A stretch of DNA of 64,000 bases, taken from sequence record ON529858.1; one strand, given 5' to 3'. Numbering within the stretch: position 1 is the first letter of the stretch; each line of letters starts with the position of its first letter. The notes beneath the pieces were generated by a model. The model ran no database searches. It was not told the origin of the DNA and saw nothing but the letters and a program-made list of their open reading frames with translations. A program made the position numbers and the translations under genes. Positions 3,501 to 51,928 of the stretch are shown here, one piece after another.

Positions 3501-6500
3501 CAGCCCTCGCGGTGAAGCGGGCGCGGGTGGCGGCGCGACGGGCGGCGATGGTCCCCACGCGAACGCCGGCACCGGCGGTTCGCAGACGGCGGGCGGCTTC
3601 AACAAGACGGCTCCGAGCAACGTCGCCTACCAGGGCGCGGCGCTCCAGGGCGGCAAGGGCTCGCCCGGCGTCGCCACGACTCCGAGCGCGGGTGCAGGCG
3701 GTGGCGGCGGCGGGGGCTACTTCGGCGGCGGCGGGGGCGGCTTCGACTCCGGCTCGGGCGGCATCTATCCCGGCGGCGGCGGCGGCTCGGGCTACATCAA
3801 CACGCTCGCCGGCGCGACCGGCACGACCACGGCCGGAACCGGCACCGGCGGCGCGGCGGCGGGAACCTCCGATCCTCTCTACCCTGGCGGTGGCGAAGGC
3901 GTCGGCGGCGTCGGCGACGTCTCCGTCATGACGAACGTCAAGGACGGCGGCAACGGCGCCATCACCTACTACGTCACGCCCACGACGGGCGGCGACATCG
4001 GCACCGTCACTCTGACCTCTCCGACGGGCACGGCGCTGCGCCAGGGCGCGGAAGTCCGTTACGATTTCTCGGGCGCGGCTCAGACCGTCGTTGTGCCTGC
4101 AACCGGCACGGCTGTGGTCAAGGCCTGGGCCGGCGGCGGGGGCGGCGGCTACAATCAGAAGGGCGCGGCGACCAACGGCGCCGGAGCCTCCGGCGGCTTC
4201 ATCACGGCGCAGCTTCAGGTCGATGCCGGCGACGTCATCAAGGTCGAAGTCGGCGGCGGCGGCCTGGGCGGACGCACGAGCGCGGCGCTAGGCGGCTGGC
4301 CCGACGGCGGTTCCGGGCAATACGGCGGCGCCTCCGGTTCGGAGCAATATGGCGGCGGCGGCGGCGGCGGATCGACCCGCGTCTACGTCAACGATGTCCT
4401 GCAACTGGTCGCGGGCGCAGCCGGCGGCGGCTTTGGTCCGCAAGCCGCGACTCCCGGCATCGGCTGGGCGGGTCCCGGCGGCGGCCTCACCGGCGGTGAT
4501 GGACGCGGAGCCTATGGCGTCTTCTCTCGCGGCGGCACTCAGATCGCCGGCGGCAATAACGGCTTTGACGGGCCGGGTAGCGCGCTGCAAGGCGGCTCGG
4601 TCACGACCTCGGCCGGCGGCGGCGGCGGCGGCGGCTGGTTCGGCGGCTCGGGCGGAGCCAATGCCAGCGGCGTCACGGGCGGCGCGGGCGGCGGCGGCGG
4701 CTCTTCGTGGGCCGGCGGCTCTCGCGTCATCCCTGGCTCGGTCACCACCCTGTCGGGTTCGATCGACGCCGGACCGGCGGGCGGCTCGACCGATTCCAAG
4801 TATCAAAGCCCGGTCGGCAAGGGTGGTCTCAACCGCTCCACCGCTCCGTCCGACGCCGGGTCTCCCGGACAGGTTCACATCTACTTCGACGGTCTGGCCC
4901 CGGCGAACGCCAGCGGGGCAACCGGGGGCACGATCAGCCTGACCGTCCCCACGGTCTCGACGGGCGTGCCCGCTAATGCCGTGGCACCGACCCAGGCGAT
5001 CGCACTGACGGCTCCGGCCGGCGGCGTGCTGGTCGGCCTTCCGAGGGGTCCTGTCGGCACGATCACCTTCTTCGGCGATCTCACCGGCGAAGCGACGATC
5101 CTCGCCTCGGCCACGCCGGCGATCCCCGGCCTGGAGTTGCGCGCCGAACTCGGCGGTCAGGGCACGATCGAAGCGGTCACCCTGGTTCCGCTGACCGACA
5201 ACGACCTCGCGTGGACGTCGGTGATCTCGGCAACCCTGGTGGGCGAAGTCGACTACAAGAACACGGGCGTCTCGATCATCCGCCTGACGCCGCCGCGCTT
5301 CTACCTGCCCGGCGTCGCCCCAGGCGATCCCTTCGACAACGATCTCGTCTTCAACGCGCCCCAAGGTTTCGGGCAAGAGGGCGTAGACGTCTACGCGGCC
5401 TTCTCGTCTGTCATCGCCCTGACGGCGCCCGGCGGCGACCCGCACGCGGGCGCGCTGGCGCGCAACAACCTCCCGGCCTGGAGCGCGGGCGCACCGGGAC
5501 CCTACACCGCCGCCATCAGCCTCCAACCGCTGCTCGGGGCGACGGCGGGCGGCGACGCCCTGGCCGCCAACGTCACGCCGGTGATCCTCGACCTGACCCC
5601 TCCGGGAGTCGTCGCATCCGGCATCACGATCGACGCTCCGGCCGTCTTCGACAGCCTGATCTATCTGACCGCGCCCACCGGCACGGGCGAGCAAGGCGTT
5701 CAGGCTGACGCGGACTTCGATTCCGTCATCGCCCTGACGCCCCCGGTCGGCGATCCTCACGTCATCGGTTATGCGAGCGCGGACTTCGCTTTCCGCACGA
5801 TCACCCTGACGCGCCCGCTGCACATCGTCGAGGGCAACGCCTACCTGAACATCACGGCCGATCCGCCGTTCGTTCGGATCACGCCGCCGCAGGCCCTGAC
5901 CACCTATGGCGCTTCGGTGCTCGCCACTATCCTGCCGGCGCAAATCCGACTGCGCGCCGCCAGCGCCATCGCCAGCGAGGGCAACATCGCCCTGGCTGTC
6001 GGCGGCCTGGAAGACGTGCCGCTCCTGTTCACGCCTCTGGACGGCATCGGAACGATGCAGCCCGAGGTCCGCTTCGACCCCCTCCACTTCCATACGGTGG
6101 ACGGCTACGTCGAAAACGGCGACGACACCCAAGGCCCGCTGCGATTCAAGCGTTCGCGCGACGAAGGCGCTGTTCCGACCCTCTCGGACGGCGAAATCGC
6201 GCTCAATGAGGCTGACGGGGTCCTGTTTAGCCGCAACGGGGCCGGAAATGTGCGCCAAACGCCCTATGGTGCGCTCCAAATGGGCGGTTTTGCCCCTGAA
6301 GGAGGCGTTTCGGGCCATATTTTGGCTGCTGACCGGTCCTGGAAGCCCGCAACGGCCCGATTCGACCGTCCGATCCGGCTGAGTCCGGCTCTGGGCGCCC
6401 TCGTGCCCTTGTCGAACGACCCCGTGGGCGTCGAAACCCGCGTCCTGCCGAACACGCGCACCCACTATCACCCCTTCTTCGTTCCCAAGCAGGTCGGGGT

Positions 6501-8334: not shown

Positions 8335-8703
8335 ATGTCCAATCGCGTCCGCATCTATTCGCCGCTTACCAACGAGCCCTTCGACGTCACCGAAGCGCGC
8401 GCCACGAAGCTGCGTCTGGATCACGGCTGGCTCAGCCAGCCCTACACCGAGACCGGTGACGCGACCGACCTGGGAACCGGGATCGGCGAAGACACCGGAG
8501 TCGTCGACTCCGTCGTCCGTGTGCCCGATTCCGAGAACACGGTGATCGACTGGCGTGACATGGAACAGGTGCAGACCTCGGACGGCCCCGGCCTCCCGGA
8601 TCACACCGAGTCCGAAACGCCGCCGGAAACGGACGTCGAGGAAGAGCCGGCCGCCAAGGGCCGAGGTCGCGGGCGGAAGTCCGCTGAGACCGCCGAGGAC
8701 TAA
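8335..8703 (+). CDS. Hypothetical acidic protein (122 aa)
   Basis: Directly downstream of a promoter; phage-like codon usage; low-complexity acidic C-terminus. Confidence 0.7.
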   Translation: MSNRVRIYSPLTNEPFDVTEARATKLRLDHGWLSQPYTETGDATDLGTGIGEDTGVVDSVVRVPDSENTVIDWRDMEQVQTSDGPGLPDHTESETPPETDVEEEPAAKGRGRGRKSAETAED

Positions 8704-8787
8704 ACCCCTCCTGCGGTGCTCGGCGCCGCTTCTGCACAATCCGACCTTTTCTTTCACCGGCGCGCGGGGCGCGCCTGGAGTCTGACC

Positions 8788-9300
8788 ATGCTCGTTATCA
8801 ATCTCATCGCTGGCCCTGGCGCCGGCAAGAGCACGTCCGCCGGTATCCTGTTCGGGCTGATGAAGATGGCGAATGAGAAGGTCGAACTGGTCCAGGAATA
8901 CGCCAAGGACAAGACCTACGAACAAGACTGGACGGCGCTGGACAACCAGTTTATGTGCGCCGCCCAGCAGGATCAGAGGCTTCGGCGCCTTCTCGGGCAT
9001 GTCGACTTCTGCATCAACGACTCGGCGCTCCCCCTGGGGCTCGCCTACGCCAAGGCTCCGTTCGACAAGCCCTGGTTCACCGACGCTGTCTGGGGTCTCT
9101 ACGACACCTACAGCAACTTCAACGTCTTCATCGAGCGGGTGAAGCCGTTCCAGCAATACGGCCGCGCCCACAACGAGGCGGAGAGCCGGGAGAAGGACGA
9201 AGAACTGAAGGCCATCTTCGCGGGCCGTATCAATCTGACCGTGCCGGGCGACGCCGCCGCCGGGGCAGTGATATACGAAGCGATCAAGAGATTGTCCTAG
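8788..9300 (+). CDS. P-loop NTPase, AAA_28/NadR-type kinase-like (170 aa)
   Basis: GGAG RBS, ATG at 8788; N-terminal VINLIAGPGAGKST Walker A, followed by VELVQEYAKD. Confidence 0.75.
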   Translation: MLVINLIAGPGAGKSTSAGILFGLMKMANEKVELVQEYAKDKTYEQDWTALDNQFMCAAQQDQRLRRLLGHVDFCINDSALPLGLAYAKAPFDKPWFTDAVWGLYDTYSNFNVFIERVKPFQQYGRAHNEAESREKDEELKAIFAGRINLTVPGDAAAGAVIYEAIKRLS

Positions 9301-9320
9301 CCCTCGGGCCGGGACCACAT

Positions 9321-9408
9321 GCGGGTCTGCTGGAGTGGACGAACAGGGCGGTCTCCAAAACCGCTAGGCGAAAGCCTCACAGGGGTTCGAATCCTCTGGC
9401 CCGTGCCA
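9321..9408 (+). tRNA. tRNA-Trp(CCA) with long variable arm
   Basis: Acceptor GCGGGTC/GGCCCGT, G73, CCA; anticodon arm GCGGT-CTCCAAA-ACCGC; variable arm AGGC-GAAA-GCCT. Confidence 0.85.
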
Positions 9409-9415
9409 AAATAAT

Positions 9416-9489
9416 GCGGCCGTAGCCAAGCGGTAAGGCACCGGATTTCCACTCCGGCAGCGCGGGTTCGATCCCCGCTGGCCGCTCCA
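9416..9489 (+). tRNA. tRNA-Gly(TCC)
   Basis: CCGGA-TTTCCAC-TCCGG anticodon arm; GGTTCGAT T-loop; TCCA end. Confidence 0.92.
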
Positions 9490-9616
9490 TCTACACTGAG
9501 GCCAGCCGGGCATTTCATCCTCCGGCTGGGGTAACGAAAAGGCAGTAGCCGGGGTTGTGCCGGCGAACCCGCCCAGAGGCTGGACCTGGGCTCCCTCGGA
9601 CGACGTGCCTACCGAC

Positions 9617-9692
9617 GCGACCATCGTATCATTGGTGAATACACTGCGTTGCCAACGCGGGGAGGGGAGTTCGATTCTCCCTGGTCGCTCCA
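9617..9692 (+). tRNA. tRNA-Gly(GCC)
   Basis: Acceptor GCGACCA/TGGTCGC; CTGCG-TTGCCAA-CGCGG; TCCA end. Confidence 0.9.
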
Positions 9693-9702
9693 TTTTCAAA
9701 AA

Positions 9703-9746
9703 TCTACGTCAAAGTTCTTGACGTAGAGATCAACCGAGTATATAAG
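9703..9746 (+). promoter_or_regulatory. Promoter for the Glu/Asp tRNA block
   Basis: TCTACGTC-N9-GACGTAGA inverted repeat; TTGACG(9718)-N17-TATAAG(9741). Predicted start site coincides with ATG 9754 (leaderless mRNA). Confidence 0.8.
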
Positions 9747-9753
9747 CCATCCT

Positions 9754-9819
9754 ATGACGCACTTCCTGACCATTCGAGAGAGCGAGACCCACACGGGTCG
9801 AGATACGCGCGCCGCCTAG
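9754..9819 (+). CDS. Candidate leader peptide 1 (MTHFLTIRESETHTGRDTRAA, 21 aa)
   Basis: ATG ~7 nt after the -10 box; stop lies in the loop of a long hairpin that ends at TTTT just before tRNA-Glu. Confidence 0.5.
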   Translation: MTHFLTIRESETHTGRDTRAA

Positions 9820-9853
9820 ACAGCGGCACTCGTAGTCGACGGCCCGTGCTTTT

Positions 9854-9932
9854 GGAGCCGTCTTCTAAATGGACTAGGAAAACAGCCTTTCAAGCTGCTG
9901 AATGCGGGTTCGATCCCCGTCGGCTCTACCAA
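9854..9932 (+). tRNA. tRNA-Glu(TTC), irregular anticodon arm
   Basis: Acceptor GGAGCCG/CGGCTCT; CAGC-CTTTTCAA-GCTG gives an 8-nt loop or a bulged stem; ACCA end. Confidence 0.8.
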
Positions 9933-9963
9933 AGCACTCTACGAAAACGCTGCTCATCTTTAT

Positions 9964-10038
9964 GGTGCGCTCTTCTATCGGTTAAGAACACCCGTTGTCT
10001 GCGGGAAAAGCGGGGTTCGATTCCCCGGCGCATCGCCA
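9964..10038 (+). tRNA. tRNA-Asp(GTC)
   Basis: Acceptor GGTGCGC/GCGCATC; CCCG-TTGTCTG-CGGG; GCCA end. Confidence 0.88.
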
Positions 10039-10179
10039 CCTTTTTCGTGCCTACCCTCACTTTTGTTCTTGACGAACGTCGTCAATCGTGAGACACGTCG
10101 ATCCAACAACACCGGTCACGCCTCTCTTCGATGCGCCTCAGATCGGTTTCTCCTTTCATCCTTCGCAGGAACCTTCATC

Positions 10180-10308
10180 GTGACCACCCTGTCGCACAAG
10201 CTGAGCCTGAAGAGCGCCCCGTCGGCGTTGCTTTCGCTCGCCCATGCGCCGGCCACGCTGAAGTCCACCCCCGCCACCGTGGCGTCCACCTCGGAGACCT
10301 TCTCGTAA
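10180..10308 (+). CDS. Leader peptide 2 (42 aa; Thr/Leu/Ser/His/Lys/Ala/Pro sensor)
   Basis: AGGA RBS at 10167, GTG start; MTTLSHKLSLKSAPSALLSLAHAPATLKSTPATVASTSETFS. Residues 2-33 all belong to the 7 amino acids of the downstream tRNA block. Confidence 0.8.
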   Translation: MTTLSHKLSLKSAPSALLSLAHAPATLKSTPATVASTSETFS

Positions 10309-10374
10309 GGTCTCAGCAGGTGGCGCCCCCTGGGGCCTCACCTGCGAAATGCTTCCCAAGCACCCAGCAGTTGT

Positions 10375-10408
10375 AGGTCCCAGGCGCCAGCCTCGGGGCC
10401 TTTTTCTT
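10375..10408 (+). terminator. Intrinsic terminator (attenuator) upstream of tRNA block 2
   Basis: AGGTCCCAGG-CGCCAG-CCT(C)GGGGCCT followed by TTTTCTT. The 5' arm can alternatively pair with CCTGGGGCCT at 10329-10338. Confidence 0.75.
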
Positions 10409-10420
10409 GTCCAAAATCAA

Positions 10421-10497
10421 CGGTGTTTAGCGCAGTCTGGTAGCGCACTCGGTCCGGAACCGAGGGGTCGCAGGTTCAAATCCTGCAACGCCGACCA
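10421..10497 (+). tRNA. tRNA-Pro(CGG)
   Basis: CTCGG-TCCGGAA-CCGAG (C33, A37); C1-G72, A73, CCA. Confidence 0.88.
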
Positions 10498-10505
10498 TCC
10501 ATCAT

Positions 10506-10580
10506 CTGGGTCTGGCCGAACGGTTAGGCACCTCGTTTGGGGCGAGGACTATGCGGGTTCGAGCCCTGCGGCCCAGACCA
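10506..10580 (+). tRNA. tRNA-Pro(TGG)
   Basis: CCTCG-TTTGGGG-CGAGG; acceptor CTGGGTC/GGCCCAG; ACCA end. Confidence 0.9.
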
Positions 10581-10588
10581 TCTTCAAC

Positions 10589-10665
10589 CGGTGTTTAGCG
10601 CAGTCTGGTAGCGCACTTGCTCGGGAAGCAAGGGGTCGCAGGTTCAAATCCTGCAACGCCGACCA
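10589..10665 (+). tRNA. tRNA-Pro(GGG)
   Basis: CTTGC-TCGGGAA-GCAAG; otherwise identical to 10421-10497 (duplication with a different anticodon arm). Confidence 0.88.
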
Positions 10666-10671
10666 ACAAAT

Positions 10672-10744
10672 GCCATGGCCTCGGGATTGGGGCCGGCCCC
10701 TTGGTATGGGGAAGAGCAGGGTTCGAGTCCCTGCCATGGCTCCA
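10672..10744 (+). tRNA. tRNA-Thr(GGT)
   Basis: Acceptor GCCATGG/CCATGGC; CCCC-TTGGTAT-GGGG; TCCA end. Confidence 0.82.
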
Positions 10745-10752
10745 AGTTTCAT

Positions 10753-10823
10753 GCCTGCGCCTCGTGGGAGGTCGGCCCTTTCGTAGTGGGCCAGCGAGGG
10801 TTCGACACCGTCCGCAGGCTCCA
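10753..10823 (+). tRNA. tRNA-Thr(CGT), compact D arm
   Basis: Acceptor GCCTGCG/CGCAGGC; GCCCT-TTCGTAG-TGGGC; same G1-C72, C2-G71, U73 as the adjacent Thr tRNA. Confidence 0.72.
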
Positions 10824-10893
10824 TCATCAACCAACGAGCCTGAGAGGCAGGCAGCGATCTTAGCCCACACACCGGCGGATCGCAACAAGATAC

Positions 10894-10982
10894 GGACGTG
10901 TAAACCCCTAGCGGCGATGGGTGCGGGCTCTTAATCCGCTGTCGAAAGACCACCGTGAGTTCGAGTCTCACCACGTTCTCCA
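10894..10982 (+). tRNA. tRNA-Lys(CTT) with long variable arm
   Basis: Acceptor GGACGTG/CACGTTC; GCGGG-CTCTTAA-TCCGC; variable arm GTC-GAAA-GAC; U73. Confidence 0.82.
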
Positions 10983-10984
10983 TC

Positions 10985-11053
10985 ATGTTCCCGATCGGGA
11001 TCATCTCGTGCCGGCGCCGTCGAAAGCGCCCCGGATGTTCCCGATCGGGATCA
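10985..11053 (+). repeat. 19-bp direct repeat ATGTTCCCGATCGGGATCA, two copies, each with a 12-bp palindrome
   Basis: Exact copies at 10985-11003 and 11035-11053. Confidence 0.85.
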
Positions 11054-11063
11054 CACAGATCAT

Positions 11064-11148
11064 CCCGGTCTGGCGAAGTAGTAGACGCGCTGTCCTCAGA
11101 AGGCAGTGTCCTTGTGACGGGAGGGTGCGAGTCCCTCGACCGGGACCA
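11064..11148 (+). tRNA. tRNA-Leu(CAG)
   Basis: CTGTC-CTCAGAA-GGCAG; long variable arm; T-loop TGCGAGT; A73. Confidence 0.87.
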
Positions 11149-11156
11149 ACATCTCT

Positions 11157-11242
11157 GCCCGACTGGTCGGAATCGGTAGACGCAGCGACCTCAAAAGTCG
11201 TGGCCTTCGGGCGTCCCGGTTCAAGTCCGGGGTCGGGCACCA
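11157..11242 (+). tRNA. tRNA-Leu(CAA)
   Basis: GCGAC-CTCAAAA-GTCGT; long variable arm; ACCA end. Confidence 0.92.
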
Positions 11243-11250
11243 AACCTCAT

Positions 11251-11335
11251 CCTGGGGTGACGAAGCTGGTAGACGTGGCGGTCTGAGAGGCCGCTGTCGA
11301 AAGACGGGCGGGTTCGAATCCCGCTCCCAGGACCA
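11251..11335 (+). tRNA. tRNA-Leu(GAG)
   Basis: GCGGT-CTGAGAG-GCCGC; long variable arm; ACCA end. Confidence 0.9.
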
Positions 11336-11346
11336 AGGGTTTCTAT

Positions 11347-11419
11347 GCTGTCAGGCGCTTGGTGCGCAGGCTGGGTTGTGTCCCCGGTCGGTTGGGTTCG
11401 AAACCTAATGACAGTGCCA
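11347..11419 (+). tRNA. tRNA-His(GTG), no encoded G-1
   Basis: Acceptor GCTGTCA/TGACAGT; CTGGG-TTGTGTC-CCCGG. Absence of G-1 is an established trait of tRNA-His in several alphaproteobacterial orders including Caulobacterales. Confidence 0.78.
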
Positions 11420-11425
11420 TTTCAT

Positions 11426-11499
11426 GGGGTTGGGGCTTGGGTCCCAGGTTCGTTTTGCAAACCTACCGTGTCGGGTTCGAATCCCGATGACTCCACCAA
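11426..11499 (+). tRNA. tRNA-Ala(TGC), irregular anticodon stem
   Basis: Acceptor GGGGTTG/TGACTCC gives G3:U70 and A73 (Ala identity); loop TTTGCAA closed by GT/AC within a mismatched stem. Confidence 0.65.
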
Positions 11500-11564
11500 C
11501 ACGGCGCCGGGCACGGCGCCACCGTTCGCTGACATCGCGAGATGTTCGCGATCGACGACATCAT

Positions 11565-11654
11565 GGAAGGCTGGCTGAGTCCGGTTTAAGGCACCGGTTT
11601 CGAAAACCGGCGGACCGAAAGGTCCCGTGGGTTCGAATCCCACGCCTTCCTCCA
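11565..11654 (+). tRNA. tRNA-Ser(CGA)
   Basis: CCGGT-TTCGAAA-ACCGG; long variable arm GGACC-GAAA-GGTCC; U73. Confidence 0.9.
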
Positions 11655-11660
11655 CATCAT

Positions 11661-11750
11661 GGTAGGCTGGCTGAGTCTGGCTGAAGGCACCCGCCCGGAA
11701 AGCGGACAGACCGCAAGGTCTCCAGGGTTCAAATCCCTGGCCTACCTCCA
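11661..11750 (+). tRNA. tRNA-Ser(GGA)
   Basis: CCGC-CCGGAAA-GCGG (C33); long variable arm; U73. Confidence 0.87.
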
Positions 11751-11883
11751 AGCTGGGTCCCAGCACCGACGGCGCCCTTCAAGCGCCGGGTCTGCTGGGG
11801 GCAAGAGCCCGAGCCGTTGCTGACACCCCTATCGTGTGGGGACGTAAGGCACACGAGGCCGGCGGGCTGCGCCCTTGTATCAC

Positions 11884-11970
11884 GGATGGTGAACCCTGGG
11901 CGGCCAGGGCGCCGGTTGCTAACCGAACGGAGCCGCAAGGCCTGGGGTTCGAGTCCTCCGCCATCCGCCA
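11884..11970 (+). tRNA. tRNA-Ser(GCT)
   Basis: Acceptor GGATGGT/GCCATCC; loop TTGCTAA; long variable arm; GCCA followed by a T-tract. Confidence 0.85.
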
Positions 11971-11986
11971 CTTTTTTCGCAACAAT

Positions 11987-12029
11987 CTACGTCGCGGATG
12001 TTGACGCCCGCCGGGCGCTCTGGCATCAA
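11987..12029 (+). promoter_or_regulatory. Promoter motif upstream of candidate ncRNA and def
   Basis: ACGTC-GCGGATGTT-GACGC with TTGACG at 12001-12006; the -10 box is weak. Confidence 0.55.
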
Positions 12030-12435
12030 GGTCCCAGGTCGAAGCGGCCGGCAGGTTTCACCTCCCACCGCCCAGCGAGACCTCAGTGTGGAGTTCTTGG
12101 TTGCCTCTCCCGAACAAGGGCGACCACAAAATCACGGTCCGTCCGGGGGTCACCGGACGGGGTAACTCGACGGGTTGATCCTCCGGCTGAGCCACCCGAC
12201 TACCGCGTGCGCTCAGACAGGTCCTGGGTCGCAGAGTCCTAGCCCTGTCCCCTGCTGCTAGGCTGGGGTTCAATGGAACCAGGGCCGTTCTGAGCGCACG
12301 CGGTTCAATAGCTTCGGCAGAGCATGAGGGTGGATTGGGGCCGTGACTCCCCGGTCCGGCGCCGTCACGGGCGCACATGCGCTCCGCCCGCAGTGGTGGA
12401 GAGAACCCGGTTCGAGTCCGGGGCCGAGGACCGCA
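12030..12435 (+). ncRNA. Candidate ~400-nt structured ncRNA ending in a tRNA-like T arm
   Basis: Perfect 16-bp helix 12202-12217/12289-12304; several hairpins; CCCGG-TTCGAGT-CCGGG at 12406-12422; no convincing ORF. Confidence 0.55.
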
Positions 12436-12449
12436 CAGGAGAAGACCCG

Positions 12450-13001
12450 TTGATACGCCCGATCGTCTCTTGCACCGATCCCTTCCTCCGCATCCCGTCC
12501 GTCGAGATCGCCACGATCACCCAGGACGTCCGCGACCTCGCCCGCGATCTGGTCGAGACCGCCCTGCACCATGAGGCCGCCGGCATCGCCGCGCCCCAGG
12601 TCGGCGCCGGCCTGCGCATGGTCTGCTACATCGACGTCCCCGGCGCCACGAACCTGCCCCAGGTCCACCTCAAGCAGTTCTGGAAGCCGACGATCCTGAT
12701 TAACCCCGTGATCTCCAAGGCCTCCGAGGCGATGATCGAGTGGGATGAGGGATGCCTGTCGATGCCGGGCTCCTACTTCCCCGTCAGCCGCCACCGCCTG
12801 ATCGACGTCAGCTACACCGACCTCAACGGCGAGACCCAGACCATCACCGACGCCGGCGGCTACAAGGCCATCTGCCTCCAGCACGAGATCGACCACCTCG
12901 ACGGCATCTTGAACATCGACCGCATCGTCGGCCCGCTCAAGAAGGCTATGATCATGACCTCCTGGCGCAAGGCCCAGCGCCGCGCCCAGCGGGCCGCCTG
13001 A
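12450..13001 (+). CDS. def: Peptide deformylase (183 aa)
   Basis: AGGAG RBS with TTG start; motifs GIAAPQVG, EGCLS and QHEIDHLDG (HEXXH). Confidence 0.95.
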   Translation: MIRPIVSCTDPFLRIPSVEIATITQDVRDLARDLVETALHHEAAGIAAPQVGAGLRMVCYIDVPGATNLPQVHLKQFWKPTILINPVISKASEAMIEWDEGCLSMPGSYFPVSRHRLIDVSYTDLNGETQTITDAGGYKAICLQHEIDHLDGILNIDRIVGPLKKAMIMTSWRKAQRRAQRAA

Positions 13002-13017
13002 AACTTTTTCTGAAAAA

Positions 13018-13060
13018 GTTCGTCGTTGTTCTTGACGAACCGATCCACTTAGTGTAGACA
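13018..13060 (+). promoter_or_regulatory. Promoter for tRNA block 3
   Basis: GTTCGTC-N9-GACGAAC perfect inverted repeat; TTGACG(13032)-N17-TAGACA(13055). Predicted start site at ATG 13068 (leaderless). Confidence 0.8.
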
Positions 13061-13067
13061 TCGCTTC

Positions 13068-13163
13068 ATGACCTCCTATCGCCAAAACGTGCAGAACATT
13101 CGAGTCGTCCGGTTTAACCGGACGGGCCGTTCGCATGTGCGTGATAGTGGGACCCAGATTTAG
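13068..13163 (+). CDS. Leader peptide 3 (31 aa; Tyr/Arg/Gln/Asn/Val/Ile/Phe sensor)
   Basis: MTSYRQNVQNIRVVRFNRTGRSHVRDSGTQI; residues 4-18 all belong to the 7 amino acids of the downstream tRNA block. Confidence 0.82.
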   Translation: MTSYRQNVQNIRVVRFNRTGRSHVRDSGTQI

Positions 13164-13195
13164 GGTCGTAGACCCCACCCTCCACCGCTTCGAAT

Positions 13196-13230
13196 GGCCC
13201 GTCTGGTAACCCAGGCGGGCCTTTTCTTTT
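13196..13230 (+). terminator. Intrinsic terminator (attenuator) upstream of tRNA block 3
   Basis: GGCCCGTCTGG-TAAC-CCAGGCGGGCC followed by TTTTCTTTT. The 5' arm is complementary over 11 bp to CCGGACGGGCC (13118-13128) inside the leader ORF. Confidence 0.85.
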
Positions 13231-13266
13231 GTCCAAAATCCTCAAGGAAAACATCAAGATCACCCT

Positions 13267-13349
13267 GGGTGGTGAAAGTCAGTTGGCTCTGACAGCGGTC
13301 TGTAACACCGCGCCGCAAGGGAGGGGTTCGATGCCCTCACCACCCACCA
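13267..13349 (+). tRNA. tRNA-Tyr(GTA)
   Basis: GCGGT-CTGTAAC-ACCGC; acceptor GGGTGGT/ACCACCC; ACCA end. Confidence 0.85.
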
Positions 13350-13350
13350 C

Positions 13351-13425
13351 CGTTCCATAGCTGAGATAGAATAGCGCGGGCTTGAAAACCCCGAGACGGA
13401 GATGCGAACGCTCCTGGGACGGCCA
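13351..13425 (+). tRNA. tRNA-Phe(GAA)
   Basis: Loop TTGAAAA; acceptor CGTTCCA/TGGGACG; atypical T-loop TGCGAAC and G73. Confidence 0.75.
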
Positions 13426-13441
13426 ACATTTCGAACTTCGA

Positions 13442-13516
13442 AGCGCTTTAGCCAAGTAGAAAGGCACGGCTGTGACATGGCCGCACGCGCTGGTGCGATT
13501 CCAGCAAGCGCTACCA
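13442..13516 (+). tRNA. tRNA-Val(GAC)
   Basis: CGGCT-GTGACAT-GGCCG; acceptor AGCGCTT/AAGCGCT; T-loop TGCGATT. Confidence 0.85.
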
Positions 13517-13521
13517 AGTTT

Positions 13522-13595
13522 TCTCTCGTAGCATAAAAGTGATGCGAGCGGCTGATAACCGCTAGAAGAAGGTGCGATACCTTCCGGGAGGACCA
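13522..13595 (+). tRNA. tRNA-Ile(GAT)
   Basis: AGCGG-CTGATAA-CCGCT; T-loop TGCGATA; ACCA end. Confidence 0.87.
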
Positions 13596-13661
13596 AATCG
13601 GCCGGGGATGCTTCCCCGGCCCTCATCAACGCTTAGATCGAAAGGTCAACGACTAAACCAC

Positions 13662-13736
13662 AGCGTGTTAGGCAAGTAGAAATCCGGGGGTGTCACATAC
13701 CTCTATGCGAGGGTGCGATTCCTTCACACGCTACCA
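13662..13736 (+). tRNA. tRNA-Val(CAC)
   Basis: GGGGT-GTCACAT-ACCTC; acceptor AGCGTGT/ACACGCT. Confidence 0.83.
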
Positions 13737-13751
13737 ACTATACTTCTGTGA

Positions 13752-13829
13752 TGCCGGGTGGCGGAACTGGTAGACGCAGCACGCTTTGAACGTGTATAAC
13801 TGTGGGTTCGAGTCCTACGCCGGCAGCCA
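13752..13829 (+). tRNA. tRNA-Gln(TTG)
   Basis: GCACG-CTTTGAA-CGTGT; U1-A72, G73. Confidence 0.85.
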
Positions 13830-13884
13830 GAAGTATCGACGAAGTCTAGTCCGCTCTAAGGACTGAAGATCGTGAGGGTTTTGT

Positions 13885-13970
13885 TTGCTCGTGGCGGAAG
13901 CGGGTAGACGTGCCGGACTGTTAATCCGGGGCCGAAAGGCGTGCAGGTTCGAGGCCTGCCGGGCAAGCCA
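13885..13970 (+). tRNA. tRNA-Asn(GTT) with long variable arm
   Basis: CCGGA-CTGTTAA-TCCGG; variable arm GCC-GAAA-GGC; GCCA end. Confidence 0.85.
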
Positions 13971-13988
13971 AACCCTCATCAAGATCAC

Positions 13989-14071
13989 GTCGCTCTAACC
14001 GGGCCGGTCTACGAAACCGGTCGCCGTAGCTGGAGTTGAAAAGGGTGGTTCGAGTCCACTGAGCGACGCCA
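13989..14071 (+). tRNA. Atypical tRNA-Arg(ACG): no D arm, 23-nt variable region
   Basis: Acceptor GTCGCTC/GAGCGAC; CCGGT-CTACGAA-ACCGG; canonical T arm; GCCA end. Confidence 0.65.
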
Positions 14072-14090
14072 TACTTTCGAGCCGACCAAC

Positions 14091-14165
14091 GCGCCCAGGT
14101 GGTCCAGTTAGTGGGCGCCGGGCAGTCTACCCGGAGGGTGCGGCGAACATCCGCTCACGGGCGCA
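14091..14165 (+). pseudogene. tRNA-like cloverleaf without a T-loop consensus or CCA (Asp-like GTC loop)
   Basis: GCGCCC/GGGCGC terminal helix; GTCC/GGGC arm; CCGGG-CAGTCTA-CCCGG; GCGG-CGAACAT-CCGC; abuts the next tRNA. Confidence 0.4.
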
Positions 14166-14265
14166 GTCCCGGCTCGATCCACGTCTCGGTAACCGGTCCG
14201 GCTTCCGAAGCCGGGAGCCGTAGCTGGAGTTGAGAAGGGTGGTTCGAACCCACTCCGGGACGCCA
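14166..14265 (+). tRNA. Atypical tRNA-Arg(CCG), 100 nt
   Basis: Acceptor GTCCCGG/CCGGGAC; CCGGC-TTCCGAA-GCCGG; shares the variable segment GCCGTAGCTGGAGTTGA with Arg(ACG). Confidence 0.65.
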
Positions 14266-14272
14266 TCAACAT

Positions 14273-14347
14273 GCCGGCGACGCCTATTGGATGGGCGCCC
14301 GCCTTCTAAGCGGTCCTGGGTAGGTTCGAGTCCTTCCGCCGGCGCCA
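14273..14347 (+). tRNA. tRNA-Arg(TCT)
   Basis: CCGC-CTTCTAA-GCGG; acceptor GCCGGCG/CGCCGGC; GCCA end. Confidence 0.88.
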
Positions 14348-14384
14348 TAGTTCTTGACGCCGACCGCGTCACCCTCCATACATC

Positions 14385-14767
14385 TGCCAGGGCCTGTTCC
14401 TGGGCCTGGACTACGGAATGCGGGGACCTTTCGCGAGGGCGCCTTGGCGGACCGAAACCAGCAGATCGAACGCGGCTCGCCGTGGAGGTCTGAGGGAAAT
14501 CCGAAACCAGGGCCTTCCATCTCACCGACGACAACCTGGGGCATACGCCGGGTCGAGACGGGACACGGGCCGGTGCCGCTATGGACGGCCCCCGAAGGAA
14601 GCGACGACCGTGCCGCGTCGCCCTGCGCGGTCGTCACTATTCTAGCGGCCCGTCCTTGAGAAAGACGGGGTTGAGAGGCACGGAACGCGGTTCACCCCCG
14701 CCGCCCAAGGCAGACGGATCGGAAATGCAGCCACGCTACGGCCGATCCCCGCTCTCATATTTTTTTT
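14385..14767 (+). ncRNA. Candidate ~380-nt structured ncRNA
   Basis: Preceded by TTGACG-N17-CATACA; long-range helix 14441-14450/14701-14711 with internal hairpins; ends at a T8 tract; no credible ORF. Confidence 0.5.
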
Positions 14768-14778
14768 GACGCTACCCG

Positions 14779-14928
14779 TTGACAAGGTCCGGGTAGGGTT
14801 CTACAACCCCATTCGTGAGCACGGCAATACCACGGGCGCCCGCCAATCGGGTGAGGTAACGCTGGTCTCCTTTCATCCGTCGTCAGATGCACCCCGTCGG
14901 TCCCGTCCGGCGGGGTGTTTCGCTATTT
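14779..14928 (+). ncRNA. Candidate small RNA with its own promoter and terminator
   Basis: TTGACA(14779)-N17-TACAAC(14802); anti-Shine-Dalgarno-like TCTCCTTT at 14866; hairpin GCACCCCGTCGG/CCGGCGGGGTGT at 14889-14918 followed by T-rich sequence. Confidence 0.5.
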
Positions 14929-15038
14929 GGATGAACCGCTTACAACAGCACTCGTCAACGTCGTGAATCTTGACTTTCGCAGTGCGGTGTGCCAGGGTGC
15001 GGCTCACATCAACTGCTCAGAAGACGGGGTCCCAGAGC

Positions 15039-15428
15039 ATGTCGCAAGACAACCTCCAAGGATTCCCGGCGTCGCCCGGCGATCCGCTTATTGTCCGGAT
15101 GCTCGCTGAGATGCAGAGTTCGCAAACCCGCACGCGGGAAGATACGATCGAGATCAAGGGCGCCGTCAAGTCGATGTCCGAGGCGGTCACCCGCGTTGAG
15201 AAGCGCCAGGAGGCTTTCGAGAAGGAAGTTGACCAGCGGATCGAATCGGAGCACCGCAAGAACAACGCCAAGATGGTCGAGATCGCCCGCGAGGTGAAGA
15301 CGATCCGGGAAGAGCGCATCGCTGAGAAGGCTCAGTGGCGCGGCCCGGAAAAGGTCATCGGCATTCTGGTTCTGGTTGCGTCGGCGCTTGGCGCCATTGT
15401 GGCAATCAAGGCCTTCTTTTTCCCTTAA
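15039..15428 (+). CDS. Coiled-coil protein with C-terminal transmembrane helix (129 aa; holin/XhlA-like shape)
   Basis: Heptad-rich middle region; hydrophobic VIGILVLVASALGAIVAIKAFFF tail. Confidence 0.65.
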   Translation: MSQDNLQGFPASPGDPLIVRMLAEMQSSQTRTREDTIEIKGAVKSMSEAVTRVEKRQEAFEKEVDQRIESEHRKNNAKMVEIAREVKTIREERIAEKAQWRGPEKVIGILVLVASALGAIVAIKAFFFP

Positions 15429-15511
15429 TCGGACGTCGTCGATGTTGACGCTCTCACCCAAACGGGTTAACCACGGTCTAACAGTGGGGCTCCGGTTGGA
15501 GGGGAACAGAT

Positions 15512-15730
15512 TTGAACTCGGCGAGCGTCACAGAGGTTCCGCGTGAAGCGGTAAATAATGTGGTCATTGATGTTGAAGCCGCTCAAGAAGGCCTCATCAT
15601 GACCATGACCCAGATGGCAGAGATGTCGACTGGCGAAATGACGAAGGAAGTGCTGGACGATCTTCGGCGCCTGTATCACCAGATCGGCGCCGACCTCGCC
15701 CGTGTCGAAGTGGGGCTCAGTCAGACGTAA
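15512..15730 (+). CDS. Hypothetical protein (72 aa)
   Basis: GGAGG RBS before TTG; downstream of a conserved promoter motif at 15432-15450. Confidence 0.55.
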   Translation: MNSASVTEVPREAVNNVVIDVEAAQEGLIMTMTQMAEMSTGEMTKEVLDDLRRLYHQIGADLARVEVGLSQT

Positions 15731-15755
15731 CCTGTTTCCTTGAAAGGGAGCGACG

Positions 15756-51894: not shown

Positions 51895-51928
51895 CCAACG
51901 TCGTGAGATATTGTTCTTGACGAGGGTC

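Follow-up and report, generated by a model that had tools for sequence, protein, structure and literature searches.

A candidate leader-peptide attenuator ahead of tRNA genes in phages of the Dolichocephalovirinae

The trp leader comprises four segments and the his leader six, and in both of them the stall site lies inside segment 1, which is masked by the stalled ribosome. Each of these leaders senses one amino acid via a run of identical codons, and their targets are biosynthetic enzymes. Multivalent leaders, among them those of thr (Thr and Ile), ilvGMEDA (Leu, Val and Ile) and ilvBN, respond to two or three related amino acids, with feedback through amino-acid synthesis. In the E. coli pheST attenuator (pheM leader), a single amino acid is sensed and the target is an aminoacyl-tRNA synthetase. 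T-boxes bind uncharged tRNA directly, with neither a ribosome nor an ORF. Leader-peptide attenuation also operates in the host genus of phage phiCbK, at the ilvBN leader of Caulobacter crescentus (PMC4117421). Our literature searches found no prior description of leader-peptide attenuation for tRNA genes, no Ribo-seq, Term-seq or reporter data on the leader analyzed here, and nothing relevant on a leader attenuator of the E. coli tRNA-Phe genes pheU and pheV.

The purpose of phage tRNA genes has been debated for decades, and almost nothing is known about their regulation. Among the roles proposed are compensation for codon usage, substitution for host tRNAs that have been degraded, and evasion of tRNA-cleaving defences (for example PMC10264068 and PMC11464382). 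The 64-kb window, which is the whole stretch of DNA analyzed here, comes from Brevundimonas phage vB_BgoS-Bajun, a giant phage of the Dolichocephalovirinae. Judging by its sequence, we consider it likely that a leader ahead of a block of 14 tRNA genes (leader 2 and block 2, respectively) functions by ribosome-mediated (leader-peptide) transcription attenuation, determines how much of block 2 is transcribed and serves as a demand sensor for tRNA supply. The phage would then probably make block 2 tRNAs only when ribosomes are short of them. An attenuator had been put forward for this locus in the original prediction, and that reading is supported in that all of its sequence-level predictions are borne out, in many lineages independently.

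The leader ORF and the tRNA genes behind it

The leader is preceded by a promoter-like region (10041-10093, + strand) consisting of a T-rich stretch, GTTCTTGACG (10065-10074), a 13-nt spacer and GTGAGA (10088-10093). A -35-like TTGACG (10069-10074) falls within GTTCTTGACG, of which the window contains five exact copies, each on the + strand and four of them in the tRNA region (at 9714, 10065, 13028 and 14350). Although these features lead us to infer promoter activity for 10041-10093, a generic sigma-70 scan did not call this region. The stretch after the fourth copy (14350-14775) was not above shuffled sequences in structure (z = -0.3) and gave no Rfam match.

Within the 5' leader, a Shine-Dalgarno-like AGGA (10167-10170, + strand), read from the sequence, lies 9 nt 5' of the GTG start of a 42-codon ORF that extends from 10180 to a TAA ending at 10308 on the + strand. 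The short ORF and translation start signal expected of a leader-peptide attenuator are therefore present. GenBank lists the ORF as hypothetical protein BAJUN_02440, and its translation is VTTLSHKLSLKSAPSALLSLAHAPATLKSTPATVASTSETFS. Other frames across it are likewise stop-free, as the DNA is GC-rich, and the open frame alone therefore proves little. Its composition is more informative. Codons 2-33 (10183-10278, + strand) form an unbroken run of 32 residues drawn from P, T, K, L, H, A and S, hereafter the sensor run, which is encoded by CCG, CCC, ACC, ACG, AAG, CTG, TTG, CTT, CTC, CAC, CAT, GCG, GCC, TCG, TCC and AGC. A recount confirmed that 38 of the 41 non-initiator residues belong to this set, as had been claimed, and that the pure run ends at codon 33, before the first pairing segment (segment A). 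No longer run of its kind exists in the six frames of the window, the runner-up having 23 residues. The binomial probability of at least 38 in-set residues out of 41 is 8e-12 at a frequency of 0.416 (a proteome proxy) and 2e-8 at 0.52 (the mean of short six-frame ORFs). By both the count and the six-frame maximum, the ORF is enriched in the codons that an attenuator of this block would sense.

tRNA block 2 (10421-11970, + strand) contains, in order, Pro-cgg, Pro-tgg, Pro-ggg, Thr-ggt, Thr-cgt, Lys-ctt, Leu-cag, Leu-caa, Leu-gag, His-gtg, Ala-tgc, Ser-cga, Ser-gga and Ser-gct. ARAGORN called ten of these 14 at its default setting (Pro-cgg/tgg/ggg, Thr-ggt, Leu-cag/caa/gag, His-gtg and Ser-cga/gga). 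The remaining four, which the original prediction had assumed, were recovered at a relaxed threshold: Thr-cgt (10753-10823), Lys-ctt (10894-10982), Ala-tgc (11426-11498) and Ser-gct (11884-11970), all on the + strand and collinear with those of relatives, with weak Rfam matches for two of the four. With these genes present, the amino acids served by block 2 are those of the sensor run and no others. The leader codons match the encoded anticodons in the manner foreseen, and TTG and CTT are indeed rare in the phage, accounting for 5% and 6% of Leu codons in long ORFs. The exception is a set of four Ala GCC codons, which tRNA-Ala(UGC) is not able to read under standard wobble rules; across lineages, 2-6 GCC codons per leader fall outside the wobble range of the encoded tRNA-Ala(UGC). 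The first gene of the block, tRNA-Pro, begins at 10421, only 11 nt (10410-10420) after the U-tract of the leader terminator described below, which leaves no room for a separate promoter before it.

A second unit in the window (13068-13231, with its promoter motif from 13028) has the trp-like, four-segment layout of an attenuator. Its ORF (13068-13163), leader 3, contains the 15-residue run YRQNVQNIRVVRFNR, which is again the six-frame maximum (next longest, 12). All seven amino acids served by the tRNA block behind it (genes for Tyr, Phe, Val, Ile, Val, Gln and Asn and three for Arg) appear in this run, and no others do. Leader 3 thus resembles leader 2 in that the amino acids of the leader are those of its own block, and both in Bajun and in phiCbK-like homologues it shares the GTTCTTGACG promoter motif, the terminator-to-tRNA arrangement and TGTCCAAAATC after the terminator. 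It differs from leader 2 in having four segments in a trp-like order with sensor codons that overlap segment 1, and in drawing on a disjoint set (Y/F/V/I/Q/N/R), such that the two sensor runs have no amino acid in common. The 2:3 antiterminator helix of this unit carries a compensatory A-U to G-C change between Bajun and the Caulobacter phages. A search of metagenome contigs with the hairpin pattern of unit 3 returned 61 matches; since none had at least two tRNA genes nearby, they were taken as chance occurrences of a GC-rich hairpin.

Mutually exclusive helices and the predicted switch

Between the end of the sensor run and tRNA-Pro, the + strand holds a chain of alternative pairings. Segment A (10282-10301) covers the last ORF codons and forms the 5' arm of A:B, and the stop codon TAA (10306-10308) sits at the apex of this hairpin. 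Segment B (10307-10326) can pair with A or, through its core (10316-10323), with B'. Segments C (10329-10338) and B' (10338-10345/8) together occupy 10329-10348 and are either held in the B:B' hairpin or form the 5' half of the antiterminator. A small middle hairpin (UGCUU-CCC-AAGCA, 10350-10362) falls within the antiterminator loop. The 3' half of the antiterminator is supplied by segments D' and D (10365-10385), of which D (10375-10385) doubles as the terminator 5' arm. Segment E (10390-10401) is the terminator 3' arm, and with the U-tract TTTTTCTT (10402-10409) it completes the unit at 10390-10409.

The A:B, B:B', C:D and D:E pairings, all of which had been predicted with their coordinates, were each present on folding. 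A (10282-10301) pairs with B (10307-10326) at -26 to -30 kcal/mol and B (10316-10323) with B' (10338-10345) at -21 to -22 kcal/mol. C (10329-10338) and D (10375-10384) form 10 bp, extended by 10342-10345 with 10367-10370, at -31 to -33 kcal/mol. The terminator hairpin (10375-10385 with 10390-10401), which is GC-rich with 11 bp and one bulge, has a folding energy of -19 to -20 kcal/mol (-19.8) and is followed by UUUUUCUU at 10402-10409. An intrinsic terminator therefore lies between the leader ORF and the genes it would regulate, and the C:D helix with its extension is an antiterminator that uses the 5' arm of that terminator and excludes it. The 146-nt region folds far better than shuffled versions of itself (z = -5.8; 0 of 200 as good). 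Complementarity in Bajun likewise exceeded that of shuffles for A with B (z = -4.8) and for C/B' with D (z = -3.6), with none of 300 shuffles equal in either case.

A structure of this strength might also belong to an untranslated 5' leader, which would act as a tRNA-precursor processing or stability element, or as a riboswitch-like or tRNA- or protein-binding switch without a ribosome. Helices inside the ORF fit this idea as well, and the terminated trp leader RNA of Sinorhizobium is reported to act in trans as an sRNA (PMC7968998, PMC7298713). We regard it as highly improbable nonetheless, and as the least probable of the readings considered here. When 8500-16000 was scanned with cmscan against all Rfam families at E <= 1, no T-box was found and no family covered the leader ORF or the hairpins. 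The sole match near the leader was abiF at 10112-10147 in the 5' untranslated region, at a chance-level E of 0.81. The T-box riboswitch model, with its specifier loop and T-box sequence, thus had no match here. An untranslated element would leave the amino-acid restriction inexplicable at the RNA level, and in relatives the start codon and the Shine-Dalgarno-like site are conserved with fixed spacing while the frame stays open through indels of 3 nt and 9 nt.

Under the attenuator model, host RNA polymerase would initiate near 10065-10093, and a ribosome would load on the 42-codon leader, where codons 2-33 would sample codons of the 14 downstream tRNAs. When aminoacyl-tRNAs are plentiful, the ribosome would keep up with the polymerase, reach the final codons and the stop, and mask A. 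B would then be unpaired and B:B' would form, with C locked inside the hairpin; D would stay single-stranded until E emerges, and the resulting D:E terminator would stop transcription at the U-tract, 12 nt short of tRNA-Pro. The physiological signal for readthrough would be a shortage of any one of the seven amino-acid/tRNA species, which would stall the ribosome in the sensor run and leave A unmasked, so that A:B would form once B has been transcribed. B' and C, now free, would pair with D' and D as the antiterminator, E would be without a partner and the polymerase would enter the tRNA genes. The output would be more of the limiting tRNAs and faster translation of the leader, closing a negative feedback loop. 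Because there are five segments and the sensor is upstream of segment 1, any stall along about 30 codons would have the same outcome, which amounts to an OR gate for seven amino acids.

One point against this scheme is that the loop of B:B' contains C, which may form a pseudoknot with D. An intra-ORF hairpin (10189-10252, + strand; -26 kcal/mol) may serve as an RNA polymerase pause or synchronizing hairpin; an equivalent is predicted in eight of eight folded sequences, and in Bajun alone the hairpin is no better than shuffles (z = -1.3).

When RNA ending at D was folded at equilibrium, C:D won in most lineages under all three masks, whether or not A was masked, and the switch would therefore have to be kinetic. 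A:B is more stable than B:B' by 7-17 kcal/mol, and the estimated barriers are 10-17 kcal/mol from formed B:B' to C:D and 10-20 kcal/mol from A:B to B:B'. In a barrier-limited co-transcriptional model, the antiterminator was obtained in 19 of 27 settings with A free and the terminator in 46 of 81 settings with the ribosome at the stop, in a simulation that is crude and whose output is sensitive to parameters. Co-transcriptional folding with A masked or unmasked, the check suggested for the original prediction, gave the predicted direction in most relatives when simulated in this way, but for Bajun itself, with the ribosome at the stop, just 2 of 9 settings ended in the terminator. The B core begins 8 nt 3' of the stop codon, which places it at the edge of or just outside the ribosome footprint. 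Together with the stop codon at the A:B apex, this geometry is compatible with a switch set by ribosome position. The fate of an untranslated leader in this model varies by lineage.

Conservation and divergence in the Dolichocephalovirinae

The same design was found in nine sequence-distinct Dolichocephalovirinae lineages, namely Bajun, Gurke/Kikimora, the Domovoi group, Shapirovirus (phiCbK, Karma and Ccr10), Poindextervirus (Rogue, BL57 and BL10), Colossusvirus and three uncultured relatives. It consists of the promoter-like region, the Shine-Dalgarno-like site, the set-restricted ORF, the stop codon in or beside the A:B apex, the exclusive helices, the terminator and tRNA-Pro. A homologous ORF (gp083 in phiCbK) occupies the syntenic place immediately before tRNA-Pro(CGG) in each of 8 Brevundimonas phages, over 25 Caulobacter phage records and the 3 uncultured lineages. 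In all 16 phage-genome sequences examined, CTTGAC followed by GTGAGA, GTAGAGA or GTAAAGA occurs after a T-run 5' of the leader, a purine-rich GGA, AAGGA or GAGAG is found 5-9 nt 5' of the start codon, and the start codon itself is kept. Two further searches added no relatives. A search through the NadR-like/AAA_28 protein that adjoins the tRNA cluster gave 26 IMG/VR loci, all from unrelated low-GC phages without tRNA clusters, and the leader DNA pattern TTGTCGCAYAA..CTGAGC had 24 matches in IMG/VR, of which the one real case was CcrKarma itself. Two regions of Gurke, 4475-4660 (upstream of tRNA-Ser) and 2219-2413, were considered as further leaders and rejected as not composition-biased.

The peptide sequence changes freely between lineages while its composition does not. 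Differences among leaders number 90, 85 and 90 at codon positions 1, 2 and 3, and non-synonymous changes outnumber synonymous ones by 128 to 36. A composition that is kept while third-position bias is missing is the signature expected of a codon sensor, and not of a functional protein. In-set runs are 20-40 residues long in the 16 tabulated phage-genome sequences. Out-of-set residues are confined to positions 2-3, to the tail overlapping segment A and to isolated single sites, these being Asn-7 (Shapirovirus and BL57), Tyr-23 (Gurke) and Gly-16 (Colossusvirus). Two recent indels between close relatives, of 3 nt and 9 nt, both keep the frame. Each tabulated anticodon class of block 2 has at least one readable codon in 16 of 16 sequences, with Pro-UGG served via CCG only. 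The rare TTG is present in every leader, having been relocated in Bajun and Colossus and never lost.

The geometry of the helices is retained along with the composition. In every folded lineage except Colossusvirus, the inner A:B hairpin has the stop codon in its apical loop or next to it, despite differing hairpin sequences. The distance from the stop to tRNA-Pro is 107-119 nt in 19 measured sequences and, by coordinates, about 115 nt in Colossus and PW. Relative to the stop, in the 10 tabulated sequences, A:B spans -28 to +29, B:B' +8 to +49, C:D +21 to +83 and the terminator +67 to +101, with energies of -26 to -32, -12 to -25, -23 to -31 and -15 to -21 kcal/mol, respectively. This five-segment geometry is kept while the helix sequences are replaced between Brevundimonas and Caulobacter phages, where C/D/E read GGGGCC/GGCCCC/GGGGCC (most Brevundimonas phages) and GGAGCCGC/GCGGCUCC/GGAGACCGC (Caulobacter phages). 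Complementarity exceeds that of shuffles for A with B in 11 non-Colossus sequences (z = -2.7 to -5.8) and for C/B' with D in 12 of 12 sequences tested (z = -2.6 to -4.4). The phiCbK and Karma equivalents of the terminator are annotated in GenBank as rho-independent terminators, whereas that of Colossusvirus is poor, with a 4-6 bp stem and no U-run. A formal base-pair covariation count was not obtained from MAFFT alignments, because these were not structure-consistent and the helices fell out of register across lineages; the subset that aligned well hardly varied 3' of B. In place of covariation counts, whole helices were compared and tested against shuffles.

These data bear directly on whether the ORF is an ordinary small protein gene with its own terminator. 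In that case, the tRNAs would arise from leaky read-through or upstream transcripts, and the helices and the amino-acid match would be by-products of a GC-rich, structured sequence. The ORF is annotated as a hypothetical protein in many genomes, the Caulobacter-phage versions constituting PHROG 12742 of unknown function. Moreover, peptides rich in Ala, Ser, Thr, Pro and Leu are common in high-GC frames, and the best other short ORF in the window is 88% in-set. Functional proteins, however, evolve otherwise than by predominantly non-synonymous change free of third-position bias, and the leader ORF has no significant Pfam match. The composition match is a window-wide extreme that leader 3 replicates with a different set. 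The A:B and C:D complementarity is significant and is kept in nearly every tested lineage while sequences change. The stop codon, too, is conserved in its place at the apex of the hairpin. We therefore hold a protein-coding function to be very improbable. The Ser/Thr-rich peptide was also considered as a RiPP precursor, which was rejected because no modifying enzymes lie nearby and there is no purifying selection on its sequence.

A general-translation attenuator would have a structural logic identical to that of the tRNA-demand model. Arrival of the ribosome at the stop would lead to termination, and the leader would gauge the overall availability of ribosomes or the coupling of transcription to translation, for instance following host shut-off, with its codon make-up being secondary. 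A five-segment leader whose sensor precedes segment 1 would respond to ribosome delay of whatever cause. Ser tRNAs are missing from the Poindextervirus phages Rogue, BL57 and BL10 (Gill et al. 2012, PMC3556154), yet the leaders of these phages contain 9-11 Ser codons; with the tRNAs lost and the codons kept, leader composition does not track tRNA content there. Among the lineages compared, there was no case of joint change in leader composition and tRNA set, and the GCC codons that block 2 does not serve point in the same direction. This alternative leaves unexplained, however, why the run is limited in every lineage to the seven amino acids of the block, why leader 3 has a disjoint set matching its own block, and why rare codons such as TTG are retained. 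We consider it unlikely, and favor attenuation in response to tRNA demand.

Relation to described attenuators

If the three promoter-leader-terminator modules are taken together, it seems somewhat more probable than its opposite that phages of the phiCbK group possess a codon-resolved homeostat of their own tRNA supply. The modules would share out 16 amino acids (E/D; P/T/K/L/H/A/S; Y/F/V/I/Q/N/R), with each leader acting as a test strip on which ribosome speed sets tRNA transcription. Were this the case, the phage itself would report which tRNAs count as limiting. tRNAs would be made on demand through a direct feedback in which their supply governs how fast ribosomes traverse the leader, and this speed in turn governs tRNA transcription. 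The virus would turn on its substitute tRNAs only upon failure of the host pool, for example through late codon demand or host tRNA-cleaving defences. Classical attenuation would be extended from amino-acid metabolism to tRNA genes, as the first case of ribosome-mediated attenuation there, in a design absent from the textbook cases: an odd number of segments, a sensor upstream of segment 1 and an OR gate for seven amino acids. The question is directly testable, since the same element is present in phiCbK, a model phage of the genetically tractable Caulobacter crescentus NA1000. Being compact and natural, such leaders might also find use as reporters of translation stress at specific codons.

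Leader 2 had been described in the original prediction as a his-like cascade. The multi-hairpin cascade is there, but the layout is not of the his-operon type, which has six segments and a single-amino-acid codon run inside segment 1. Leader 2 has five segments and seven interleaved amino acids, and its sensor (10183-10278) lies upstream of segment 1, ending before A, as the mechanism given in the original prediction in fact has it. With enterobacterial trpL and hisL it shares a short leader in which regulatory codons are enriched, an intrinsic terminator close ahead of the genes under control, an antiterminator built on the terminator 5' arm, and a chain of exclusive hairpins among which ribosome position decides, as is predicted here. 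It departs from them in that a stall would free segment 1 and a finishing ribosome would mask it, and in being a viral element whose targets would be tRNA genes. Like a T-box, it would make a terminator/antiterminator choice that reports tRNA charging to translation-related genes; unlike a T-box, it has an ORF and no Rfam T-box match. The pheST attenuator (pheM) is similar in that a component of the translation apparatus acting on the sensed tRNA is attenuated, whereas leader 2 would target the tRNA genes themselves. As in the thr, ilvGMEDA and ilvBN leaders, several amino acids would be sensed by one leader. In contrast to those leaders, the seven amino acids of leader 2 are unrelated and are set by the downstream tRNA genes, and its feedback would pass through tRNA supply.

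Leader ORF and the tRNA genes of block 2

The source of the window, Brevundimonas phage vB_BgoS-Bajun (ON529858.1, 207 kb), belongs to the Dolichocephalovirinae, the phiCbK-like giant siphoviruses, and the leader ORF sits within its 5-kb tRNA region (subtracting 124,000 from a record coordinate gives the window coordinate). The ORF, VTTLSHKLSLKSAPSALLSLAHAPATLKSTPATVASTSETFS, runs on the plus strand from GTG to TAA (10180-10308, 42 codons), has an AGGA site 9 nt upstream of the GTG as read from the sequence, and is annotated in GenBank as hypothetical protein BAJUN_02440. The other reading frames across it are likewise without stops in this GC-rich DNA, which counts against giving weight to the open frame by itself. 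On its 3' side, ARAGORN with default settings called ten tRNA genes (Pro x3, Thr-ggt, Leu x3, His and Ser x2). Four further genes assumed in the original prediction, absent from both the GenBank annotation and the default ARAGORN output, were recovered on the plus strand at a relaxed threshold: Thr-cgt (10753-10823), Lys-ctt (10894-10982), Ala-tgc (11426-11498) and Ser-gct (11884-11970). They fill gaps between the default-called genes, are collinear with the tRNA order of relatives, and two of the four have weak Rfam matches. Block 2, the array that opens with tRNA-Pro, thus comprises 14 tRNA genes, and the amino acids they serve number exactly seven (P, T, K, L, H, A, S).

The relaxed threshold also returned Phe-gaa and third Arg tRNAs at 13351-13425 and 14171-14265, likewise missing from the annotation and the default calls. 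Of the six relaxed-threshold genes, some have Rfam matches and several have long variable arms or odd D-arms. A default ARAGORN call, tRNA-Arg(ccg) at 12349-12432, overlaps the stretch annotated as the start of the peptide deformylase gene, lying wholly within it, and is without Rfam support (12324-12450). The first ~40 residues of that CDS are unlike deformylase, so its annotated start may be too far upstream.

Our count reproduced the claim that 38 of the 41 non-initiator leader residues belong to the block 2 set, with an unbroken sensor run through codons 2-33. The binomial probability of at least 38 of 41 is 8e-12 at the set frequency of the phage's long ORFs (0.416) and 2e-8 at the mean of short six-frame ORFs (0.52). 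At 32 residues, the longest in-set run in six frames of the 64-kb window is that of the leader ORF, and the runner-up has 23. Codons and anticodons pair as originally listed, except that the four Ala GCC codons are unreadable by tRNA-Ala(UGC) under standard wobble rules. Of the two Leu codons described as looking rare, TTG accounts for 5% and CTT for 6% of Leu codon use across the phage's genes. A Pfam search with the leader peptide gave no significant match; its Caulobacter-phage counterparts form PHROG 12742, where no function is assigned.

Competing helices and the proposed switch

Folding placed all four helices of the original prediction where it had put them, on the plus strand: A:B (10282-10301 with 10307-10326), B:B' (10316-10323 with 10338-10345), the antiterminator C:D (10329-10338 with 10375-10384; 10 bp, lengthened by pairing of 10342-10345 with 10367-10370) and the terminator D:E (10375-10385 with 10390-10401, then UUUUUCUU). 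The tRNA-Pro gene starts 12 nt past the terminator UUUUUCUU. The leader region folds much better than shuffled sequences (z = -5.8); a hairpin within the ORF (10189-10252) recurs in relatives and is not significant alone (z = -1.3).

A long-range pairing is also predicted between the translation start region (10172-10183) and leader codons 27-31 (10260-10270), with a counterpart in Gurke (locus L002, ~2988-3005 with ~3089-3100). It displays an apparent compensatory change, CUUC/GAAG in Bajun and Domovoi versus UUUC/GAAA in Gurke and Kikimora (Lys AAG to AAA), and if formed might gate ribosome loading.

We propose a switch built on a five-segment chain of helices in which adjacent pairings compete: A:B, B:B', (C+B'):(D'+D) and D:E. 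With A free, A:B would form while B emerges, C/B' would pair with D'/D, and the terminator would be blocked. A:B is more stable than B:B' by 7-17 kcal/mol, with an estimated barrier of 10-20 kcal/mol from A:B to B:B'. A ribosome over A at the end of the ORF would instead leave the B core exposed, and B:B' would be made before D exists; the core starts 8-14 nt downstream of the stop codon, either at the rim of a ribosome footprint or outside it. D would then remain for E, because the estimated barrier from B:B' to C:D is 10-17 kcal/mol. We infer that a stall anywhere across ~30 codons would give the same output, which suits a sensor of seven amino acids. A pseudoknot of C, in the B:B' loop, with D appears sterically conceivable.

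In equilibrium folding at the decision point, D pairs with C in most lineages whether A is masked or not, so the switch must be kinetic. A crude, barrier-limited and parameter-dependent co-transcriptional model moves in the predicted direction in most relatives, with a weak response in Bajun. Of 27 settings with A free, 19 ended in the antiterminator; of 81 with the ribosome at the stop codon, 46 ended in the terminator. Gurke, Kikimora, Domovoi, Ccr10, phiCbK, Rogue and BL57 behave mostly as predicted; with the ribosome at the stop, Bajun forms the terminator in just 2 of 9 settings. When A is masked in Bajun, the two folds are close in energy and depend on the extent to which B is covered. 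For a leader with no translation at all, the predicted outcome varies by lineage.

Conservation of the leader among relatives

With the leader region as blastn query, homologous sequence (70-74% identity) turned up immediately 5' of tRNA-Pro(CGG) in seven other phages of Brevundimonas. Caulobacter phages gave a weak match in syntenic position. Further relatives were gathered by retrieving matched loci and searching again with the Caulobacter version. The arrangement is common to Shapirovirus (phiCbK, Karma, Ccr10 and others), Poindextervirus (Rogue, BL57, BL10) and Colossusvirus (Colossus, PW). Three uncultured lineages (P0001, P0007, P0008) were added by profile searching among 5.8 billion predicted proteins; in their contigs the ORF lies 107-118 nt ahead of a Pro-...-Leu-His tRNA array. 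The start codon follows a purine-rich Shine-Dalgarno-like site, and a promoter-like CTTGAC(A/G)...GTGAGA-type element stands behind a T-run, in 16 of 16 phage-genome sequences.

The in-set run spans 20-40 residues in the 16 phage-genome leaders tabulated, and the uncultured-lineage peptides consist almost entirely of in-set residues. Out-of-set residues are confined to positions 2-3, to the C-terminal tail overlapping segment A, and to isolated sites (Asn-7 in Shapirovirus and BL57, Tyr-23 in Gurke, Gly-16 in Colossusvirus). Differences among Brevundimonas phages are spread evenly over codon positions 1, 2 and 3 (90/85/90), and non-synonymous changes in the ORF number 128 versus 36 synonymous. 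Composition kept while sequence drifts is what would be expected of a codon sensor and is unexpected of a functional small protein. All 16 tabulated leaders have at least one readable codon for each anticodon class, tabulated as CCG, CCC, ACC, ACG, AAG, CTG, TTG, CTC/CTT, CAC/CAT, GCG, TCG, TCC and AGC; Pro-UGG is sampled through CCG only. The rare TTG, which is codon 4 of the leader in most lineages, is relocated rather than lost in Bajun (codon 18) and Colossus (codon 11). Between close relatives there are two recent indels: Domovoi and Bambus differ by 3 nt, Ccr10 and Karma by 9 nt.

Poindextervirus phages are without Ser tRNAs (Gill et al. 2012, PMC3556154); having lost those of block 2, Rogue, BL57 and BL10 yet keep 9-11 Ser codons in their leaders. 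This counts against the sensor reading, and the loss offers a natural test of whether leader composition follows the tRNA set. No case of joint change in leader composition and tRNA content was found among the relatives compared.

Comparison was made at the level of helices in place of a pair-by-pair covariation count, because MAFFT left the helices out of register across lineages. When ten sequences are aligned at their stop codons, the four helices fall at near-identical positions with similar energies: -26 to -32 kcal/mol for A:B, -12 to -25 for B:B', -23 to -31 for C:D and -15 to -21 for D:E. The stop codon lies 107-119 nt from the tRNA in 19 sequences (~115 nt by coordinates in Colossus and PW). 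Helix sequences vary by genus. Most Brevundimonas phages have CAGCAGGUG/CACCUGCUG as B/B' and GGGGCC/GGCCCC/GGGGCC as C/D/E, Caulobacter phages have GGGUGC/GCACCC and GGAGCCGC/GCGGCUCC/GGAGACCGC, and the closest uncultured relative of Bajun has GGUGCGGC/GCCGCACC as B/B'. The inner A:B sequence changes in nearly every lineage (GAGACCUU/AAGGUCUC, GGCUGG/CCAGCC, CCUG/CAGG and others), with the stop codon in or beside its apical loop in all lineages except Colossusvirus. Against dinucleotide shuffles, A x B complementarity scores z = -2.7 to -5.8 in 11 non-Colossus sequences, and C/B' x D scores z = -2.6 to -4.4 in 12 of 12. The non-significant A x B value in Colossus (z = -0.7) is possibly due to fixed windows that do not fit. 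Colossusvirus retains the ORF and analogues of B:B' and C:D, and has a weak stem without a U-run at the terminator site.

Other RNA features were observed in these loci. A tRNA-Tyr(GUA)-like cloverleaf (RNAfold; 8-bp acceptor stem, long variable arm) lies just upstream of tRNA-Phe in Ccr10 (locus L009, ~5020-5103) and at the equivalent place in phiCbK, Rogue and BL57, overlooked by tRNA finders; the phiCbK genome paper states that these phages have no Tyr tRNA. Rogue has a match to skipping-rope RNA (RF02924; locus L012, 1688-1784; 45.8 bits, gathering score 36.7) between tRNA-Gly and the Glu/Asp leader. Gurke has a weak tmRNA-like Rfam match (locus L002, 4765-4982; 31.7 bits, below the gathering score of 47) between two tRNA-Ser genes.

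Related units and known attenuators

The exact promoter-like motif GTTCTTGACG has five copies in the window, all on the plus strand and four of them in the tRNA region. The copy at 13028 opens a second candidate attenuator (13028-13241, plus strand) with an ORF, MTSYRQNVQNIRVVRFNRTGRSHVRDSGTQI (13068-13163; sensor YRQNVQNIRVVRFNR), helices and a strong terminator (13196-13221 plus U-tract), followed by Tyr, Phe, Val, Ile, Val, Gln, Asn, Arg, Arg and Arg tRNAs. Residues 4-18 of the ORF draw on all seven amino acids of these tRNAs (Y, F, V, I, Q, N, R) and on no others; this run of 15 is the six-frame maximum for that set (next 12) and shares no amino acid with the sensor run of leader 2. Homologues in Gurke, Domovoi and Caulobacter phages retain the match between leader and block. 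Structurally, the unit is predicted to be a four-segment, trp-like attenuator, with segments 1 to 4 being UCGUCCGGU (inside the sensor), ACCGGACGG(GCC), GGCCCGUCUGG and CCAGGCGGGCC; its 2:3 antiterminator helix has one compensatory change, A-U in Bajun to G-C in Caulobacter phages. A Glu/Asp unit (9714-9853, plus strand; GTTCTTGACG at 9714) has a 21-codon ORF, MTHFLTIRESETHTGRDTRAA (9754-9819), and a long hairpin then CUUUU, abutting tRNA-Glu and tRNA-Asp. E-x-E...D is present in all lineages, and the leader-tRNA match is much weaker (3 of 20 residues). These two units, although outside the original observation, are the strongest independent support for reading leader 2 as an attenuator.

The 11-mer TGTCCAAAATC follows the terminators of both leader 2 and the second unit (10408-10418, 13230-13240), occurs nowhere else in the window, and may either have been left by duplication of the module or serve as a processing signal. 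The motif GTTCTTGACG has further exact copies at 14350, directly past the last tRNA, and at 51913. The ~400 nt after the former (14350-14775), closed by a T8 run near 14760, contain no convincing ORF, no structure above shuffles and no Rfam match.

The original observation of leader ORF, composition and helices holds as a whole, and its interpretation as a leader attenuator is supported by the comparative evidence. By its defining sequence features (a leader ORF predicted to be translated, sensed codons, a terminator, an exclusive antiterminator and a geometry set by ribosome position), leader 2 is a putative ribosome-mediated transcription attenuator, and an attenuator acting as a demand sensor is its probable explanation. 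A T-box riboswitch was rejected, no Rfam family matching the leader at E <= 1. Full-text literature searching turned up no account, for phages or for bacteria, of tRNA genes under the control of attenuation or a leader peptide; the genome paper for the phiCbK group annotates the terminators. The label "his-like" does not fit the five-segment layout, with its sensor upstream of segment 1. Leader 2 differs from trp and his in parity, in that a stall would free segment 1 and a finishing ribosome would mask it. Leader-peptide attenuation operates in Caulobacter at ilvBN (PMC4117421). The mechanism is already known; what is new is the proposed target, viral tRNA genes, together with the odd-segment layout and a putative new sensor type, a multi-codon sampler defined by the tRNAs downstream.
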